The translations under genes were made by a program, and so were the position numbers. A DNA stretch of 63,787 nt, the filler included, from Perkinsus chesapeaki ATCC PRA-425 (taxonomy: Eukaryota > Protista > Perkinsozoa), in the NCBI GenBank assembly GCA_013115145.1. It is 9 parts of 9 records of this genome, joined end to end, with 100 filler letters (N's around TTAATTAATTAA, not from the genome) between each part and the next. Parts side by side here need not be neighbours in the genome. Positions count along the whole stretch, not along the records: positions 53,073 to 55,638 come from JAAPAO010001574.1; 8 more parts are not named here. One strand, given 5' to 3'. Shown one piece after another: positions 1-55,808 of the stretch (positions are counted from its first letter, which is position 1; each line of letters opens with the position of its first letter). The notes under the pieces were generated by a model. The model worked only from the letters and a program-made list of their open reading frames with translations, searched no databases and had not been told where the DNA came from.

Positions 1-403
1 ATTTTCGTTTGAACCTATTCCACATACTGAGTTAAATTTTCGGGGCACTTTGAATTTTGGCCACACCGTGCGAGCGTCACAAAGTACAGGAACGGAGAAG
101 CGGTTGAGAGACGAGAAGATAATAGAAACTAAAAGAATATTACTGAAAGAAAGATATCTATAGTATCCCTATGTTAGTTAGTGCACGCTTTCGTGTCTCA
201 AAATCTTCGTGACCATTCCTACTAGAGTCTCTTCAATTAATCGTTGGGGACAGCGAATTTGAAGAATTGCTAATTGGAGAATTTTCAAAATCATGGGGAT
301 CCGTGTTTCCTTATGAGAATCTTTTCCGTCATTTTCTTTATCTCGACAAACCAAGAGGGGGAGATGTAGTCGGGAGGACCATCGGTGGGTTGAGAGTAAA
401 TGA

Positions 404-2534
404 ATGACATGCATTCATCGAGTAACACCGTCACTGTGGAGTAAAGTTATTATCAGGTACGTAGAGCCAGTTAAGCGGATAACAGGGCCGAAGGAGTTGG
501 CTGATTTTATAGAGAATTCTCCTGTAATAACGATACAGGAAGTTCTGCCACACCGTCGGCAGAACTGGATCACCATTGTGAAGTCTAACTTATCACTTGT
601 ATATTAATTGATGTTTTATATTCTTCATTTCAGGCCTATAAAGATATCGTCGCATTCCTCGAAAGGCTTTGTACAGCAGTACAAGGGAAGAAGAACTTGG
701 ACGTAATACAACTACAGTAGCTTATCATACCGTATTTTCCCCAGATAATCGATTACTCATCAGCAGCACCATCGTCAGTTGAGGGCATTATGAATCTGTT
801 GGATATCCTCGAGTCTTGGTTGGATGATTTACCGCCATCGGACCAACCCATGAGATTTGGAAATTTAGCATTCAGGTCATCATTTTCGGGCATAATATTG
901 ATTCATTTCTATCTTTCGTTCTCTCCACTCCTGAGAATTTGCTTCAAGATTGAATCCGGCTCGAAAAGTCATCGTGAATTCCAAGCATTTCTGGAACTTT
1001 CCGGGAAATATTTTTAAAAAATGATTTTTCCAACATTTCCAACATACGATCTCTCGTAGAGTTTTTGTATCAGGTCATGGCATGCCCGACTGGTTGAGCA
1101 ACTTCCCCAATTGCTGCAAAACTTACTGCGTCCGGAACTATATCCAGCAATAATAGAACTTACGCCGTACATGTGAGCAACAGGATGGCGGAGAAATTTC
1201 GGGAAATCTTTCCAGAAAAAGTGCAAAAAAATTCGCTCAGGTTGGTCGTCAAAATTTTACCTGTGAATTTACGGATCTTCGGAGAGCTTGAAGAATTTCA
1301 AGCCATTTTTGGAGTGAAATTGTGTAGCTTTTCGAGGGTATGTTTTCGATCAGTTTGGATTCCTTCGGCAATGCAACACGTATTGATTATGGGACTGGTC
1401 ACGAGACAGCTTTTATGGCATTCCTGATGGTAAAAATGTAAAACATTAATCGCTTCGCTTCGCTTCCCTTTCAGGTTCTGATTGCTGTGGGCCATTTCGA
1501 TGATTGTGCAGTTATCGAAGATGACGGGAATGTTGAGGAAGATATTCTTGGACAAGAAATCGGTCTTAGGATTTTCCCGAGGTGAGGGGAAATATATGGG
1601 GAAAACTCAGAAATTTTCTCGAGAATATTTTTTGAAACCTTTCTGAGCAAAAAAAGTTGCGTAACTCCGAGGCAACTGTACTCCCACGCACGCTAGTTTT
1701 GCCTCCATTTTTTGTGATATTTTTCTCAGAATTTTCCGAAATTTTTCGGGTAGATACATCGCATTGATGCGTCATATACAAAAACAGTACATGTTGGAGC
1801 CAGCAGGGTCACATGGCGTTTGGGGATTGGATGATTATCATCATATGTAAGAAGAAAGGAGTCTTTTCAATTCTTCACAGTGCGAAAGATACGCCTCTTT
1901 AGTCCCTTCCTTCTGGGGGCGTGTCAGTTGGTTGGATCGAATGAGACAGATTTTGAAGGAAAACCATTAACACCGGAGAGGGTTGTGCGAAACAGGTAAA
2001 GATACAAAATAGGTCACCTTGAGGTCCATTTGATCGATTTACATTTTCCTCGAAATTCCAGCGATTCAGTACACCAAAAAACAGTGGCAAATTGTTCCGT
2101 CCAAAAATCTAACGCTTCGATCAGGTCAGTCGCTGAGTCCATTCGTTCATGGTCGATGTTTGGCGAGGCTGTGTCTTTCGTATACGAAACAAAGGTAACA
2201 AAAATTTTGGGAAAGTTTCGGAAATTTCTGCTCTTTTTCAGACCGGCGCACCATTGGCAGAAACATCGCCGATGCTTTGGGAGATATCGAGAATTGATAG
2301 TTGGGAAAGGGTGAGTTGTTGCACGCATGCGCAAAGATATCTCTACGCACTGCGAAGAATTCTTATTCAATGTCAAGGTTGCGAAGGGATTACTGCGAAT
2401 GTACCATGGAGAAGTTTTGGGTAAAAAGCCCGTTATTCAGGTGGGAAAAAAACTAAAATTTTTCGGGAATTTTTTTTCAGCATTTCTATTTCGGCTCTGT
2501 TCTTAAGTTCGATAAGCCTGATTCCAACCTTTGA
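404..2534 (+). CDS. PTPA: Phosphotyrosyl phosphatase activator (PP2A activator), multi-exon; 5' end uncertain
   Basis: Spliced exons give [97 protein letters not shown] and [10 protein letters not shown]. Stop TGA at 2532-2534. These are hallmark PTPA/RRD motifs. Confidence 0.92.
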
Positions 2535-2638
2535 AGAGTCTTCCGGATGCGTAAGATACCATCTTTAATAACATTTCTTCTTTTTGATATTTACCTTGTG
2601 TTAATATTTCCGAAAATTTTCCCATTTTTCCGCAGTAA

Positions 2639-4486
2639 ATGTCCGGATCTGGTCCTCCGCCATTTAATGGAAATCTTAGCGGAGCGAAGCTCGACGGTTC
2701 CAGTCTGATTTCATCAGCATCATCAGCAACAACTCGACGAACGCTCGGCCAGCCTCACCCAGCAAAGAGGATGCGCCCAGGCAGTTCCTTCGGGAAAGCT
2801 ACTTCAACCAAAATCGATCGTCGGGGCGAGCGCGGTTGGTTTCGCATTGAAGCGAAATTAGCTAAATTGTGGTGGTTTCAGATTCATCGGTGGAATCTTG
2901 TGGTTGGCGAGAAGGTTCCCCTTTGGATTCTTCCATATCGACTTCACCATTGATTTCCTTTAACGTCGGCGGAAGAATCTTTCAAATTACCAAGAGCACG
3001 CTCGACAAGTATCCCTCCACTGTTCTGGCCGGTAATCGATCATTTGGGCGCGCGTTTTCACATGGCCGTTAGTTACTGTATCAGACAGATGGACTAATGG
3101 TGAGGTTTGTGGGCCGATCTTCCTTGATAGGAATCCAGATGCATTTGGGTTCATATTAGATTGGTAAGAAAAATAATTTTTTGGAAGTGTTTGCGGTATT
3201 CGGTTTAGTTCGACTCATGTTTGTGAACCCGTTTTATTTGCTTATTGAGGCATTAGTTTGATATTCATTTTTCCCTGAAATTTTGCGGATTTTTTCCCCA
3301 TTTAACCATTTGTATTATCAGATTTCGACTCGAATTTGACAAGTCTAAAATTTCCTGGATTTTTAAATGCTCCTGGAAATATTTTCTGTTTTTCCCTTCC
3401 CTCATTTTTACAGGTATAGAAATGGTCGTATAGTCCTCCCAAGACATTGCCCAGTTAGCAAAGCCGCTGTTGAGATGGAAATCGAGTAAATAAGAGAAAA
3501 CTGTATTCGTGAAACGCTTCGCTCCGCCAGATATTTCGGTTTGCCATCTGATACCGACGTTGAGCTTGAAAGGCTATCTTTTGCGGAGGTTACCCATGCA
3601 AGATACGATGTAGCTCGGGTGTTCCAAAAGATACGTCAGAGCTGCTCTAATGACGAAATGAGAGGACAACGGGCGAAGCTGCTGGCTCAAGTGATAATCT
3701 TGCTAATCTTGCCGAACCTTACATTTCCTCAATGCTTAGGGTATCTTCAGCGAAATGGCTCAGAACGCAGTAGAGATCATCAATGAAGATGATTCCTGGT
3801 TCACTCAGATCTATGTGGCCCTCGCTCGGGTGCTCGGTTTTCGAAATCGTTGAAAATTAGCTAAATTGTGGCGCAGGTTGCGGAGCATTGGGGACAGGAC
3901 CTTTATTCGGTTTTTCGCCGACTTTGTCGAGATGCTTTAGAAGTCCCAAACAGAACTATATCGGCTGCGCTGGAAGAGGTATCTTGAAAGATTCAAAATA
4001 GGTCAGCTTGAATGCCTCAGGTGACCTCCACGATCAAAGACACTCTCGATGAGCTCGTCAACGAGCACGATCTTCAGGTATCGAGTATCGAAGTTGAAGT
4101 AAGAAACGAAAAAGAAAAATCGCTTCGCTCCGTTAAAATATATTAAGATACTAAATGCTCCGAATGATGAGGACCAAAGTGAAGCTGAAGATTCCACAGG
4201 ACGTTCTCAGAATTTCGATCCAGCTGATCGAGGGAAATGTGTCGGTTGCGGCGAGACTGTAGGTTGTTATGAAATCGATCAACTGGGCGAGCGCTTTTTA
4301 TGTTGACAGAGCGTCCGCAATCGATCGGGGTTGTGTCGAATATGCAATATGGAATTGCATGTGTTGTTTACATTCTTACCAGAAGAAGAGGTGGATGAGG
4401 ACAGTGCCGGTAGCGTTGAGGAAATGCAAGATGGAGCAAGATTGCAAGATAGTGAATCTGATGAGGAGCATATGGAGGATTTATAA
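2639..4486 (+). CDS. BTB/POZ (T1/KCTD-type) domain protein with acidic C-terminus, multi-exon
   Basis: ISFNVGGRIFQITKSTLDKYPSTVLA, PIFLDRNPDAFGFILDW, YRNGRIVLP and YFGLP match the T1-type BTB pattern. Last exon reads LCRICNMELH...DEEHMEDL, stop TAA at 4484-4486. Confidence 0.8.
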
Positions 4487-4665
4487 TTACGCATGGTTGT
4501 CGATTCTTTGTAATTGGTTCGTATAATATGTGTTGTAAACTTTTCGGCGGAGTGAAGCACGATGTTGACCAATTCTGATTTTCGGAATCGGTTTAATATC
4601 ATTTACTGGTAATGGAGTCTCACATGGTAGATGATGTAGTGGAGTTTGAATGAGTTGTGGTAAGC

Positions 4666-4737
4666 GGCTGTGTGGTCTAGTGGTATGATTCTCGCTTTGG
4701 GTGCGAGAGGTCCCGAGTTCGATTCTCGGCTCAGCCC
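4666..4737 (+). tRNA. tRNA-Pro(UGG)
   Basis: 72-nt cloverleaf GGCTGTG...CTCAGCC. D-arm TGGTCTAGTGGTATGA, anticodon arm CTCGC-TTTGGGT-GCGAG, T-loop GTTCGATT. Confidence 0.96.
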
Positions 4738-5091
4738 TTTCAATGGGTATTTTTTCATGGAAATCTATGTAAAATTATTCCGGAATTGTAAGCCGATAAT
4801 TCAATAACTATCATTTCTTCCCAAAACAGCCTCACAGTTGCCCAAGTGATTGCCATCATTCATTGCCGATCATGCCTCATACCCGCTGGTCTGAGTTATA
4901 TAATTTACACCCACGGTAGGCCCTACCCTCTAGTTTGACAAGACCGATATACGCCGATGATTTCCTCGTAAAAATTGATTTGAAATTTATGCAACCAACT
5001 TTCACCATAAACTGACTGTGGCTGTTTGGAAACGTGAAAATGGTTATTCGGCAAAAGATTCTTCTAAGCTCGGGTTGGTGTTCTCCCAAAT

Positions 5092-11988
<6,897 letters not shown>

Positions 11989-12149
11989 GTTGACGTATCT
12001 TTCTCTTTATACCTTCAAATGTTGTTTTGGTTGTTAATGTAGTTTTCTCATCACAGTAGCATTTACACATACTTCAAAGCCAGAGCTGGTACACATACGT
12101 AAAATGAATGATATGATGCTTAATGTTCAAATAACTGGTAACATTAGGC

Positions 12150-14100
12150 AACACGGCCAAGGGTCTGCACTCAGAGCATTTAGCGGTTCAGTGAATACCG
12201 CAATAATGGCCTATCACACTTATCCAACAATAAGATCCTCTTTGAGGGACTAAGCTTCATCAGGAGGTCAATCTGCCATTACTTCCTTACCAAAAAGCAA
12301 TCACAGAAATGTCATTCATCATCCAACTCAATCTCCTCACAAATCGAAGGCTGAAAAACTCGTTTTAAGACTGATAATTGGTTCGTGAAGATTGTGACTG
12401 GGTCATGAAGAGAAAAAATGACCCAACGTGTTTGGACAACCAATTATTAGATTTCTCCTCTCAAGAACATCTGCATCACTTGCAGCATTCCTGTTGGTTG
12501 ATTTTGGACTAACATATGGCCTGCGTTGTTAACCTGTCAACAATACCTATTGAATCTATCACACCTCATCATACCTTAATATAGGTGAAAGTTGCCTTGT
12601 TTGGGAATTTGCCAGATTTCATCATTCCAAACACCTCACTCCCAACCTAATAATTCTCAATTGCCTATGATACCACCACACCTACCTTGATCGGTTCATC
12701 CTTGGCAGCAGCAAGGACAGCTCCATATTGAGCTGATCGACCACTCAGTCTCGTCATCCACCCTAAAGCTCCACCGGCATTGGTAGTGTAATCTTGGTCA
12801 CCGGCTATCACAAGAACCTAAATGCTTTGTGGTGTTATAAACTCTAAACTGGATTGTTACTTTTATTCCGTTGTCGAGGGCATTTGTCACACTAAAGGTT
12901 GTGTTATATGACGCATACTTCACAAGAGCTGCGAAGACCTGAAAATAAACACCAGTCAACATTCTGTATCCCCCTGACCTCTACCTACGTCTTGGTTCAG
13001 CTCAACCCACTTTTTCGAGACTCCAAGTTGTCTTTGAATATTGGGGAGGTTAAGGAAAGTCCCAGGCTACCGAAGAGGTTACAAAAACAGTTTGATGATG
13101 CGAGTCTCACATTTCCAGGACGTGTCTTAAAGTATTTGCTTTCCTCTCCTGGTTTCACTCTCAAGTCATATCTAATAAACTCATCTTCTATTTATCATAA
13201 CAGTTACCATACATGCTGTGCCCGGCATCTTCTACAAAAGGTACTGTGGCGGAGTTACAAACCTCGGTGGCCTTTTGGCAAGCATCTAAAAGGAATCAAT
13301 CTGCCGAGTTATCTGATATCTTTATGTACCCGGATTTGGCTCTCCTCCTGCGGTTGCTGGTTGGCAACTTTGAACTGCGGCCTTACACTTGGAAAATAAC
13401 TGCACCATTTTTTGCAACCTAATTTCCCACTTTTCCTCGGTATTGTGGATCATGCTTACGCTGCAGCCGATACAAGTCGTCTTTTGCCAGCCATTTCGAT
13501 CGACCCGCGGTATCTACCAAAAATAAAAGTAAATATCATTCTTCAGAGATGATTACATATTCAATGGCCCCATCATTCCTGACATAATGAGGATTCCTTT
13601 CACGTTAATCGCTGCTCTTGAATCAATTATTTGCATAAGCATGCTTACCGAAGAAGCTGATAGATAGTATGATTCGACGGTAACATAAGCCTACCATCAG
13701 CCGAAGCTCCCATAAGGTAGATTTCTGTGTTAAGACTTGGCCGTTCTTTTAGGATCTCAGTGAAAGCTAGAAACCTTGATGATGAATGCTTCCAACAACC
13801 GTTCTAATATCTTCTTACAAGTCATTCACCCAATTAGTCACAGTCGTCTCAGTTGGTCCTGCGCTAAAGCCAGTATTGCCAGGGGCATCAATCCATATCC
13901 CATTTGCAGTCCTAGTCCACGAGAATCTGAAAACATTCGAAGGTATCAAATTGCAAATGCTCATAGCGTACGGGTTGGCCTGCAATGTTTTCCCATCTGA
14001 TTTCAAAGTGCAAGGGCCGATGTCGGTTACTATAGTACCGATGCTACTCTGTCCAGGCCCACCAGGAAGGTACAGAAATGTCGGTGCTTTCTCGGGGCTC
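12150..14100 (-). mobile_element. Heavily decayed LTR-retrotransposon pol remnant (integrase and possible RNase H traces)
   Basis: Minus-strand frames with many stops show integrase-like fragments (SIWSCPCCCQ, GIVDRLT, FW*GSNGRL) and a possible decayed DAS motif (YLMGASADG). Boundaries approximate. Confidence 0.35.
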
Positions 14101-52849: not shown

Positions 52850-53085
52850 GATGACGCAAACTTGAATCTCGGGCACTACACATACTCTACTATTACGATT
52901 CAATAGCCGTTCCGTTGATTCTCGAAACCTTATGAATCACTATCGAATCAGTCGGTTGGGTGTAGGGGTGAGNNNNNNNNNNNNNNNNNNNNNNNNNNNN
53001 NNNNNNNNNNNNNNNNTTAATTAATTAANNNNNNNNNNNNNNNNNNNNNNNNNNNNNNNNNNNNNNNNNNNNGCTTCTGTCCCTC

Positions 53086-53982
53086 TTATCTTGTGCAACG
53101 GGGCGTCCCGGCCGAGTAAACCAGCCCAACGAGTTGACCACACTTAACGTTTTTGTGTTGTCCGGCTAGGGCAAGCAACTGACGTTCGGTTCGTATTCTC
53201 TTGCTTACGATCCAAGAAGAGATGTCGCTCAGACGTCTTATGCGGGCACGATCGCCTACTGAGTGGTCGGCATCAGCGGCCTTGCTATCAGTCTGGGTAG
53301 GGTGCGAAGGAATCGCTGGGTGACGCGAGCTGAGGAAGGGATTGGCGTCCGTCTTGCAGGTATAGGTGTAACATCCTAGGTAGCTTGTGAATGAGCGAAA
53401 GTTGACGTTGAAGCCACGATCACGTAGTAAATTTGCGAGCCGCGGCCAACGATGGCGTCTACTAGAGCAGGTAGACACATGAAAGTGTACCCCACGGTCT
53501 TCATCGTGTTCTTCGGAGCACACACAGTAAAACTCTAATGGGACGCCCGCGTGCGAGAAGACCTGCTCGATATGCTCGCCGAAGTCTGCCTTGGTAACAT
53601 TAAGACCAGGGATCCTTGCAGTGTGACTGGACACGCGTGGGTTTGCCCAGGTGATCAAATAGTACCGACTATAATCTGGGGAACGTCGAGGAGGTGCTGC
53701 TGGAGCTGCACAGGGGGAATGACTCTGATCAGGCGGGACCTAAAATTCAAATTACTATGGGAAAAAATACGCTCGAATGAGGCGGAACGCGAAGTTCATG
53801 AGAGATCTCACCTTTTCCTCGGCTTCCGGGAGGCTGACTGCCGAATATATGGTAGGGATGCAGTCATCACTCACGATGAAGTCAGAAAGCGTGTTTGAAC
53901 CAGCTTGCGAATCAATGTTTACCTCTATGCGCACCGGAGAATCCAGTTGAGAATAGAAGGGCTCGATATCCAGGAATTCCAT
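53086..53982 (-). CDS. HUH-superfamily rolling-circle Rep endonuclease (CRESS/Replitron-like), 2 exons (53812-53982 and 53086-53739)
   Basis: Motif I YYLITWANP, motif II EEHDEDRGVHFHV, motif III YTYTCK. A 72-nt GTGAG...TTTTAG intron (53740-53811) joins a 57-codon ATG exon in frame. No helicase motifs before the stop. Confidence 0.85.
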
Positions 53983-53995
53983 GTGAAAACGGTGA

Positions 53996-54088
53996 GCTGA
54001 TCAACTGATCAACTGATCAAGCAAAAATAAATAAATATATTATATATATTCTTTAGATATCGATTGATCAGCTGATCAGTTGATCAGC
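53996..54088. other. Stem-loop with 25-bp arms (1 mismatch) of iterated CTGATCA(A/G) 8-mers and a 43-nt AT-rich loop
   Basis: Left arm GCTGATCAACTGATCAACTGATCAA (53996-54020). Right arm TTGATCAGCTGATCAGTTGATCAGC (54064-54088). Confidence 0.95.
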
Positions 54089-54394
54089 ATCGAAAAAGAT
54101 CCAGCAAGACAGCAAGAAACCGTTTCTTCACCAGAAGTCGCACAAGAGCAAGATTTTCGCTTTGATAGGCAGAGACAGAATTATTTTATATGTGGTTTTT
54201 CATCGTTTAACTACCCTCTTTGACTTGTCACGCCTCGAAGAAGACCACAAGAGCAAGCAATCATGAATCCCATCAACACCATCTCATTGAAGAACTCAAT
54301 GCGGTCGCAGGGCTACGCAGTGTTGGAATGTAATGCGCCTACTATCTCCTCTCAACTGAGTGCTTGAAGAGCTACAGCCGGCAAGTTGAGCCAC

Positions 54395-55537
54395 TTAGTG
54401 CTTGATGAGAGCCCCTCGGTTCGTAAGAACTGCTCTTACTCGCTTAACCATACTGTTAATTAAAGTGTTAGCATCAATAGTGGTGTATACTGCCTGTATT
54501 CGCTTCACAAAGTCTTCTTCTGTCTCGCACGCGCCTTCTGAGGACGCCATTGATCGGAGGCGTGTCTTGAGTATGGCAAAAGAGTTCTCTATACAAGCCA
54601 AATCTGGCGAACGGGGAGGAAAGTCCATGAACTTAATGCCTTCCGCTGTGAGAAGTCGTGTAAACGATAAAGCCCTTGGTGCTATATAGTTATCCCCCAT
54701 TATTGTTTTGCGATTGGCATGATTTCGTCTATATCGTTTTTTCAACAGGGGCACAGCTGTGCTCCGATAAAACGACTTATAAGAGTCTGCTGAGTTATCT
54801 GGTATAGCAGTAATAACGGGCGCTTCTCCCCAGGCTAGTACTCCCACCAGCTTCACCTTCTTACTCAGTCGAAACGCAGATCTCGAGTTTCGGGTGCGAT
54901 CTTCATGCCCCCAGGCACGGTCTCTCACTGCTGCACGACTGCCACTTTTGTCAAACCCTATAGTGACGCCGTCCATGTACAAACCAACTTTATGACGAAA
55001 GAACGCCGCTAGGCGTCTATCATCGTCTCCGCAAATTTTTTTGATGCGGGACGCCCACAGGAATCTCTTGCGCCTGTCACCTCTACGCTGTAGTATTCGC
55101 GCTGGTACCCGACGACACTTCCACCCTCCTTCACGGATGATCCGTAGCAGCGTGTCGTACGAAAATGGTATCCGTCTTGACGTATAGAAAGATTTGACTG
55201 TTAGAAAAGGGTGTTTCGCTCTGGCGGCTGAGAACTCTCTCAGGATAATGCGACGGCTGCGGCTATCAGCTACGTGAGGGCGGCCGACCTTAACAGCAGT
55301 AGCATGAGGGGACTTGCTAGTGTTCTTATCATTCGCATGCCGCTTGAGTGTCCTCACCACAGTAGACTGGGAGCAACCAACCGCGGCAGCAATCTGGCGT
55401 GTCGAGGATCCGTCTTTCCATCTTTTGCATATGTCTTCTTTGCTAGTTGCTGTTATATAATACGCCGAGTGGCCCTTTGAGCATCCCCGACCTGAGACAG
55501 GAACTTCGGATTGAGCGAGTTTTTCCGAGCAAGTCTC
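54395..55537 (-). mobile_element. Tc1/IS630-family transposase, DD34E; start codon and TIRs not identified
   Basis: The frame stays open upstream of the tracked ORF and includes an HTH (GSSTRQIAAAVGCSQSTVVRTL). Triad: LYMDG, MGDNY and FPPRSPDLACIEN, with 34 residues between the second D and E. Confidence 0.88.
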
Positions 55538-55808
55538 CTACTGCAGTCAATCGCAAAATTATGAATCAGCAACGCGCGTCCCCCACACCCCTCTCCAATG
55601 TTGTATACTAACACGTTCTACCTTCATGCAGTATACCGNNNNNNNNNNNNNNNNNNNNNNNNNNNNNNNNNNNNNNNNNNNNTTAATTAATTAANNNNNN
55701 NNNNNNNNNNNNNNNNNNNNNNNNNNNNNNNNNNNNNNAACAAACCATTGTCCTTTCCGAAGGGGTATAAAACAACTTCAGGCGCTCGCGGGCTGTTAGG
55801 CGAACGCC

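Follow-up and report, generated by a model that had tools for sequence, protein, structure and literature searches.

In geminivirus-type origins, Rep-binding repeats as a rule lie beside or within the stem and overlap the rep promoter, and in parvovirus terminal repeats tandem Rep-binding repeats as a rule lie inside the hairpin stem. Terminal or subterminal inverted repeats are found in both HUH and DDE transposons; to our knowledge, neither Replitrons nor Helitrons carry a DDE transposase. Rep genes of ssDNA viruses are common in eukaryotic genomes, and the usual interpretation is that of dead fossils lacking their cis elements. In Tuber melanosporum, a geminivirus-like transposon with inverted repeats of 37 bp contains Rep-like as well as transposase ORFs; the ORFs are interrupted and obvious target-site duplications are absent (Liu et al., 2011, PMC3198968). 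Here, we describe a Rep gene, a palindrome and a transposase gene that lie side by side in Perkinsus chesapeaki and P. olseni, and we compare this locus with the systems above. Perkinsus is an alveolate parasitic on bivalves such as oysters and clams and is of economic importance.

Results

A palindrome of tandem 8-mers lies directly upstream of a Rep gene

The window, by which we mean the whole stretch of P. chesapeaki DNA that was analyzed (63,787 nt, filler included), contains contig JAAPAO010001574.1 (2566 bp, assembly GCA_013115145.1) in complete form as the piece 53073-55638. The initial annotation of this piece described a hairpin whose inverted arms match at 24 of 25 positions, each arm holding three 8-mers of the CTGATCA(A/G) type, around an AT-rich loop of 43 nt. 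Our sequence analysis confirms this build: the 93-nt inverted repeat at 53996-54088 has arms of 25 and 25 nt, with 24/25 positions complementary. Its parts are as follows.

53996..54020, no strand assigned: Rep-proximal arm, three tandem 8-mers with a TGATCA core
54021..54063, no strand assigned: AT-rich spacer or loop of 43 nt, with an AGA(A/G)TA...AATAT block in common with P. olseni in the same orientation
54064..54088, no strand assigned: Rep-distal arm, three tandem 8-mers with a TGATCA core

The GC minimum of the whole piece (0.30) is located at the spacer of the palindrome. When the inverted repeat is called on all 93 nt, the alternative is a pair of 45-nt arms with 80% complementarity and a 3-nt gap. 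Folded as ssDNA, the palindrome reaches -27.1 kcal/mol (z = -8.2, equaled by 0/200 shuffles), and the Rep-sense strand folds to -26.8 kcal/mol (z = -8.7). The spacer was also considered as a structured extension of the stem and rejected, its fold alone giving z = -0.3 against shuffled sequence. The hexamer TGATCA occurs eight times in the piece against 0.88 expected (0/100 shuffles), six times in the palindrome and twice within the Rep-like gene. These two in-gene hexamers (53652-53657 and 53726-53731, one of them within a full CTGATCAG 8-mer) are not conserved in P. olseni, and they are therefore probably due to chance.

The stem ends just upstream of the Rep ATG at 53982, as annotated initially, with a gap of 13 bases (53983-53995). 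The loop had also been said to contain no canonical nonamer, and the search bears this out more strictly: the hairpin in the window has no match to NANTATTAC even when one mismatch is allowed. No match to the 24-nt iteron array was found in IMG/VR. An Rfam search over 53985-54100 returned miRNA-precursor models only, all of them far below their gathering thresholds; such matches reflect a generic hairpin shape only and are no evidence for an RNA gene.

The neighboring gene encodes a genuine HUH Rep

The gene that begins next to the palindrome is cut off by the contig edge.

53073..53982, minus strand: Rep-like gene, truncated by the contig edge, with exon 1, a GT-AG intron and exon 2 containing the HUH nuclease domain

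P0001, the NCBI partial model of this gene (minus strand, 53982 to 53209), encodes 234 aa and is interrupted by a single GT-AG intron, and the P. olseni Rep models have an intron at the same point (498 aa from a gene span of 1552 nt). The exons of the window were searched one by one; for spliced proteins, the publicly available models P0001 and P0129 were taken as they are. Sequence searches of Pfam, PHROGs and PDB with the Rep ORFs of the window returned only PF23343 (E = 0.23), and word-indexed protein searches gave self or near-self matches only; an exhaustive HMMER search found 128 relatives. In an alignment of 89 of these relatives, Tyr177 is invariant, and at least 90% of the 89 aligned Reps keep H142 and H144 of the HUH motif, an upstream Glu/His pair and Y183-x-x-K186 (P0001 numbering). 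The AlphaFold (AF2) model of the Rep built on this alignment shows pLDDT >90 across most of residues 81-200. The best PDB folds for the nuclease model are the Reps of geminiviruses, a vientovirus, circoviruses and a nanovirus together with pMV158 RepB, with E from 1.5e-5 and TM of 0.64-0.67 for the nuclease domain. The assignment of the neighbor as a Rep in the initial annotation thus holds, both in the kept HUH and Tyr residues and in the fold of the nuclease.

The nearest relatives of the Rep are P. olseni proteins that are 44% and ~40% identical to it. P0129 (L002 10001-11552) is a full-length P. olseni Rep of 498 aa with Walker A and Walker B motifs. Its predicted structure contains two confidently predicted domains, preceded by ~70 residues that are predicted to be disordered. 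The best fold match of full-length P0129 is AAV2 Rep68, while its helicase matches papillomavirus E1 (TM 0.67-0.72), SV40 large-T and B19 NS1, and profile searches agree. By predicted fold, P0129 appears to be a mosaic, in which the nuclease is nearest to geminivirus-type Reps, and the helical oligomerization region and the helicase to AAV Rep68, papillomavirus E1, SV40 large T and B19 NS1. The SF3 helicase is seen in the P. olseni relatives, and the gene in the window ends at the contig edge before its helicase half. Based on the kept catalytic residues, the nuclease fold, and the Walker motifs and helicase fold in P. olseni, the neighboring gene is a genuine HUH Rep, whose full-length P. olseni relatives are of the HUH-plus-SF3 initiator class. 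The Rep frame in the window closes once before the contig edge, owing to a single break or, as implied by the NCBI model, to a second intron.

The palindrome is conserved across Perkinsus lineages

The P. olseni loci compared were L002 (a 36-kb contig), L003 (a 45-kb contig), L005 and L006, and L004, a Logan contig (SRR12548988) from a sample without identification, was picked up via its transposase. The comparison is a small one of four lineages and seven palindrome copies (the window, L002 twice, L006, L003 twice and L004), and ~120 metagenomic Rep relatives on contigs of 1-5 kb were left out of the comparison of upstream regions. In L002 (both copies), L006 and L003 (both copies), a TGATCA palindrome precedes the Rep ATG directly, with a gap of 22-23 nt. 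The palindromes of these three P. olseni loci are composed of 2+2 8-mers with the TGATCA core on the two sides of an AT-rich spacer (43 nt in L002), and the outer pair of 8-mers that makes up the 3+3 build is specific to P. chesapeaki. The copy in L004 (2300-2400) is eroded: one TGATCA arm is kept, and a remnant of Rep exon 1 comes after the loop. Only in the loop of this eroded copy is the nonamer pattern matched exactly.

When the window is compared with either P. olseni lineage by blastn, the palindrome is the sole shared DNA. The three-way alignment of the intergenic region between transposase and Rep shows identities of 10-14/20 only within the palindrome and of 0-7/20 elsewhere. The TGATCA cores are invariant across lineages, while the bases between the cores vary. 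Pairing between the arms is kept better than in slid or shuffled controls: 69% of the cells are paired, compared to 19-42% when the partners are slid, and 10 pairs are changed on both sides, compared to 2-4 in the controls, both counted over five distinct rows. The palindromes of L002 and L006 fold with z = -6.0 and z = -4.8, respectively, and the fold of the L003 palindrome is weak (z = -0.8) in a lineage whose genes are decayed. An inversion of the loop between lineages (flip/flop) was considered and dropped, as the loops align in one orientation and their AT-richness makes alternatives unreliable.

A Rep start accompanies each of the seven palindrome copies, and ~14 kb of host sequence on the flanks contains no TGATCA cluster. 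The co-occurrence of hairpin and Rep, which the initial annotation had put forward as a check, is therefore found for every copy seen in the four lineages. Judged by sequence comparison, the palindrome is the best-conserved non-coding DNA of the Rep-transposase unit.

A transposase gene completes a two-gene unit that forms tandem arrays

On the other side of the palindrome, the contig contains a transposase frame.

54089..54394, no strand assigned: spacer that separates the palindrome from the transposase stop and does not align with P. olseni
54395..55537, minus strand: IS630/Tc1-mariner-type transposase frame (HTH and DDE_3), open throughout, upstream of Rep on the same strand

The spacer contains a tandem 8-mer (two copies) at 54102-54117 and an exact 12-mer at 54141-54152 and again at 54246-54257, 105 nt apart; neither is kept in P. 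olseni. The transposase matches profile NF033545 with E = 1.5e-16 in L002 and E = 3.3e-9 in the window, both below the NCBI cut-off, and it also matches DDE_3 (E ~3e-5) and HTH_38 (above its cut-off). The frame in the window is open for 380 codons from just after a second palindrome and has no ATG near its 5' end, and its HTH-coding part lies upstream of the first start codon called in the frame. The start of this transposase may lie in another exon or at a non-ATG codon.

The gene order of transposase, palindrome and Rep is identical in all lineages. The transposases are 47%, 45% and 47% identical between lineages and the Reps 44%, ~40% and 42%, and these comparable values across three lineages indicate that Rep and transposase have diverged together. 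Rep, palindrome and transposase make up a unit of ~3.5 kb with two genes and no capsid gene. The units are repeated head to tail in P. olseni, as tandem arrays within chromosomal contigs, with one TGATCA palindrome per unit. The L002 array (4815-12827, to the contig end) has a period of 3481 bp and 98% identity, and the L003 array (1-6393, from the contig end) has a period of ~3821 bp and 99% identity.

The state of the genes differs among the loci. Rep and transposase are intact in the complete unit of L002, and the transposase closes early once in the last, partial unit. In L003, each gene is broken at least twice per unit, and in L004, both Rep and transposase are fragmentary. The transposase frame of the window has no internal stop. 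Genes for tRNA-Ser of several anticodons, in a 150-bp tandem array (6394-11452), adjoin the L003 array, and the edge of the element apparently lies a few bases inside a tRNA-Ser unit.

A second palindrome coincides with the array edges

Between the Rep 3' end and the transposase there is a second palindrome of ~190 bp, composed of arms A and B, a spacer, and arms B' and A'. The window contains part of it, and complete copies are present in P. olseni.

55544..55603, minus strand: right half (B', A') of the second palindrome, homologous to L002 11905-11963 and L003 2509-2565
55604..55638, no strand assigned: spacer at the center of the second palindrome, as far as the end of the contig
L002 11774-11967 and 8289-8488, L003 2381-2570 and 6204-6393: copies of the second palindrome in P. 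olseni

The end of the contig in the window is probably an assembly break at the center of this palindrome. The start of the L002 array falls exactly on the CAGT of arm A, and the ...CTG of arm A' is exactly where the L003 array stops. Because the array edges coincide exactly with it, the second palindrome, with its Tc1-like CAGT termini, marks the ends of the element, and the TGATCA hairpin does not. The outer end (...CTG) of 55544-55603 in the window is accordingly a candidate element terminus. TGATCA is absent from the second palindrome, and no TA target-site duplication is found at the two available edges (one edge per array on a contig). The TGATCA hairpin was also considered as the inverted repeat of the transposase and rejected, since the CAGT-ended palindrome holds the array edges. 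The initial annotation had offered an element terminus or subterminal hairpin as one identity of the TGATCA hairpin; this is not supported, as the hairpin is located between two genes and the edges of the arrays fall on the ~190-bp palindrome.

Discussion

We favor, on balance, the reading that the 93-nt palindrome is a conserved cis site of Rep, resembling an origin in being a site of assembly and overlapping the Rep promoter. This reading is supported by the place of the palindrome, which is the same upstream of the Rep ATG while the remaining intergenic sequence can no longer be aligned. The sequence comparison supports a cis-acting role as a replication origin, an operator, or both. The view of the hairpin as the cis-acting partner of Rep, proposed initially alongside the element terminus, is thereby the part that survives at the sequence level, with the place kept in three lineages and all copies linked to Rep.

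In the mechanism that we propose, the HUH origin-binding domain of Rep would bind the repeated 8-mers and assemble on both arms. The AT-rich spacer would then melt, or the palindrome would extrude as a hairpin, and the HUH/Tyr center would nick in or beside the spacer, leading to rolling-circle-type copying of the unit. Rep bound at the palindrome may also throttle Rep transcription; autoregulation is proposed because the palindrome overlaps the necessary location of the Rep promoter. Integration into the chromosome would be handled by the transposase and the second palindrome and not by the TGATCA hairpin. We infer binding, melting, nicking and autoregulation by analogy with geminivirus-type origins, parvovirus terminal repeats and E1/large-T origins. 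Units with one palindrome each in head-to-tail arrays are compatible with rolling-circle products.

Several observations count against this reading. The nonamer is missing from the loop in the window, and the candidate nick site would be non-canonical, which speaks against an origin. TGATCA is dyad-symmetric and would also suit a dimeric host transcription factor, which speaks against a Rep site. In addition, CRESS iterons usually change along with their Rep, and since the Reps here are only 40-45% identical, the invariant core counts against Rep iterons. The lack of structure in the spacer alone, the weak fold of the L003 palindrome, the absence of the iteron array from IMG/VR and the small sample of four lineages and seven copies weigh in the same direction.

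These same properties, a dyad-symmetric core that is invariant despite diverged Reps and a loop without a canonical nick motif, would be accounted for if the palindrome were a promoter or operator only, on which a dimeric host factor or Rep as a repressor recognizes TGATCA and the spacer serves as a TATA-like core promoter, with no origin involved. In all lineages the ATG follows the palindrome at a distance of 13-23 nt, which also fits such a function. We nevertheless consider it rather unlikely, because inverted clusters of sites on either side of an AT-rich spacer whose length is conserved (43 nt in the window as in L002) are an origin-like layout, and because the complementarity of the arms is kept beyond the TGATCA cores. 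Moreover, HUH and Tyr, the catalytic residues, are retained in the Rep and require a target in DNA, and none was found elsewhere in the unit.

Whether the copies are still active bears on a further explanation, namely that the palindrome is the fossil origin of an ancestral replicon whose integrated copies are inert or domesticated, its conservation being due to recent descent or to promoter use. Both genes are broken in the L003 lineage and in L004, the Rep frame of the window closes once before the contig edge, and a capsid gene is missing, all of which would be expected of a fossil. However, the long open frames of both genes in the window and L002 persist at 44-47% protein identity, which indicates long purifying selection, and the 98-99% identity of array copies indicates recent amplification. 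We therefore regard a fossil origin as improbable.

It is very improbable that the palindrome belongs to the transposase system, either as an internal transposase-binding site or as a transposon end. The transposase gene is only 307 nt from the palindrome, and inverted repeats at or near the ends are established for both HUH and DDE transposons, but the array edges lie exactly at the CAGT/CTG of the other palindrome, which lacks TGATCA, and the TGATCA hairpin is internal and present once per unit. A hairpin that acts at the RNA level, whether in the Rep 5' leader, in the transposase 3' UTR or as a precursor of small RNAs, is equally hard to credit, and so is a MITE or microsatellite palindrome with no relation to Rep. 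The sub-threshold miRNA-precursor matches could be cited in favor, but these score far under the Rfam gathering thresholds on hairpin shape only, the 7/7 linkage to Rep starts and the ~14 kb of flanks without copies argue against both, and what is conserved is the TGATCA cores and not pairing alone.

The unit as a whole may be an autonomous hybrid mobile element, in which a capsid-less virus-type replicon, made up of a Rep with HUH and SF3 domains and a palindromic iteron origin, has long traveled with an IS630/Tc1-mariner transposase and its CAGT-ended palindrome. We put this forward tentatively, as a possible but still doubtful view of the unit. The Rep module would copy the unit by rolling circle and thereby generate the arrays, and the transposase module would insert and excise it. 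Such a partnership fits the equal divergence of Rep and transposase in the three lineages.

Set against the usual picture of endogenous Rep genes, the Perkinsus case is one in which a cis element survives beside the Rep, and its build is unusual, with iterons as the stem and no nonamer. In addition, the palindrome is packaged with a cut-and-paste transposase that has diverged in step with Rep. The locus offers a case, defined by its sequence, in which to ask how replication modules of virus type combine with DDE transposons, and it bears on the relations among geminivirus-, parvovirus- and papillomavirus-type origins. The mobile DNA of Perkinsus is largely undescribed in the literature searched, in which no description of this Rep-transposase element was found.

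Comparison with known systems

The unit shares with IS630/Tc1-mariner elements an HTH plus DDE_3/IS630 transposase and inverted arms that end in CAGT at the array edges. It differs from them in that these arms are ~150 nt apart and form one palindrome beside the gene instead of flanking it, that it carries as cargo a Rep gene and that gene's own palindrome, and that no TA duplication is seen at the two available edges. Like Replitrons and Helitrons, it is a chromosomal element with an HUH Rep, and hairpins are implicated in recognition in those elements; the Replitron protein, however, is without a helicase, and the hairpins of both kinds of element are terminal or subterminal (PMC10288648). 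In Helitrons, an SF1 helicase is fused to a two-tyrosine Rep, in contrast to the SF3 helicase of the Perkinsus relatives. The unit therefore does not match the HUH transposons (IS200/IS605, Helitron, Replitron), as the hairpin lies away from the element end and the relatives have the SF3 architecture in place of a one-tyrosine Rep without helicase or a two-tyrosine Rep with SF1.

The nearest precedent for the Perkinsus unit is the geminivirus-like transposon of Tuber melanosporum, in which a Rep-like gene and transposase ORFs are likewise bounded by inverted repeats (PMC3198968). The host and the Rep lineage differ, and the accessible part of that report mentions no Rep-linked iteron palindrome, tandem arrays or co-divergence of the two genes (PMC3198968).

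With the origins of papillomavirus E1 and polyomavirus large-T, the palindrome has in common the inverted clusters of sites about an AT-rich stretch, and the Rep an E1-like helicase fold. The nuclease activity has been lost in those initiators, whereas the Perkinsus Rep keeps both HUH and Tyr.

The resemblance to CRESS-DNA virus origins includes a geminivirus-like HUH Rep fold, a stem-loop at the rep 5' end, short repeats and an overlap with the promoter region. The differences are that the Perkinsus repeats form the stem itself and do not lie beside it, and that the 43-nt loop has no nonamer. The Perkinsus unit is also chromosomal, arrayed and accompanied by a transposase, with neither a capsid gene nor a free circle, and its Rep is ~500 aa long with a parvovirus/papillomavirus-like helicase half. 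The palindrome is thus not a canonical CRESS origin, as the nonamer, the capsid gene and the free circle are all absent.

Parvoviruses, as exemplified by the AAV ITR and Rep68, likewise have tandem short repeats in the stem, and the full-length fold of the P. olseni Rep is nearest to AAV2 Rep68. In contrast to theirs, the Perkinsus palindrome is internal, the nuclease is nearer to the geminivirus type and there are no structural genes. The hairpin is not a parvovirus telomere, as it lies between two genes and not at a genome end. By analogy with these two systems, the Perkinsus palindrome would work most like a blend of a CRESS origin and a parvovirus telomere.
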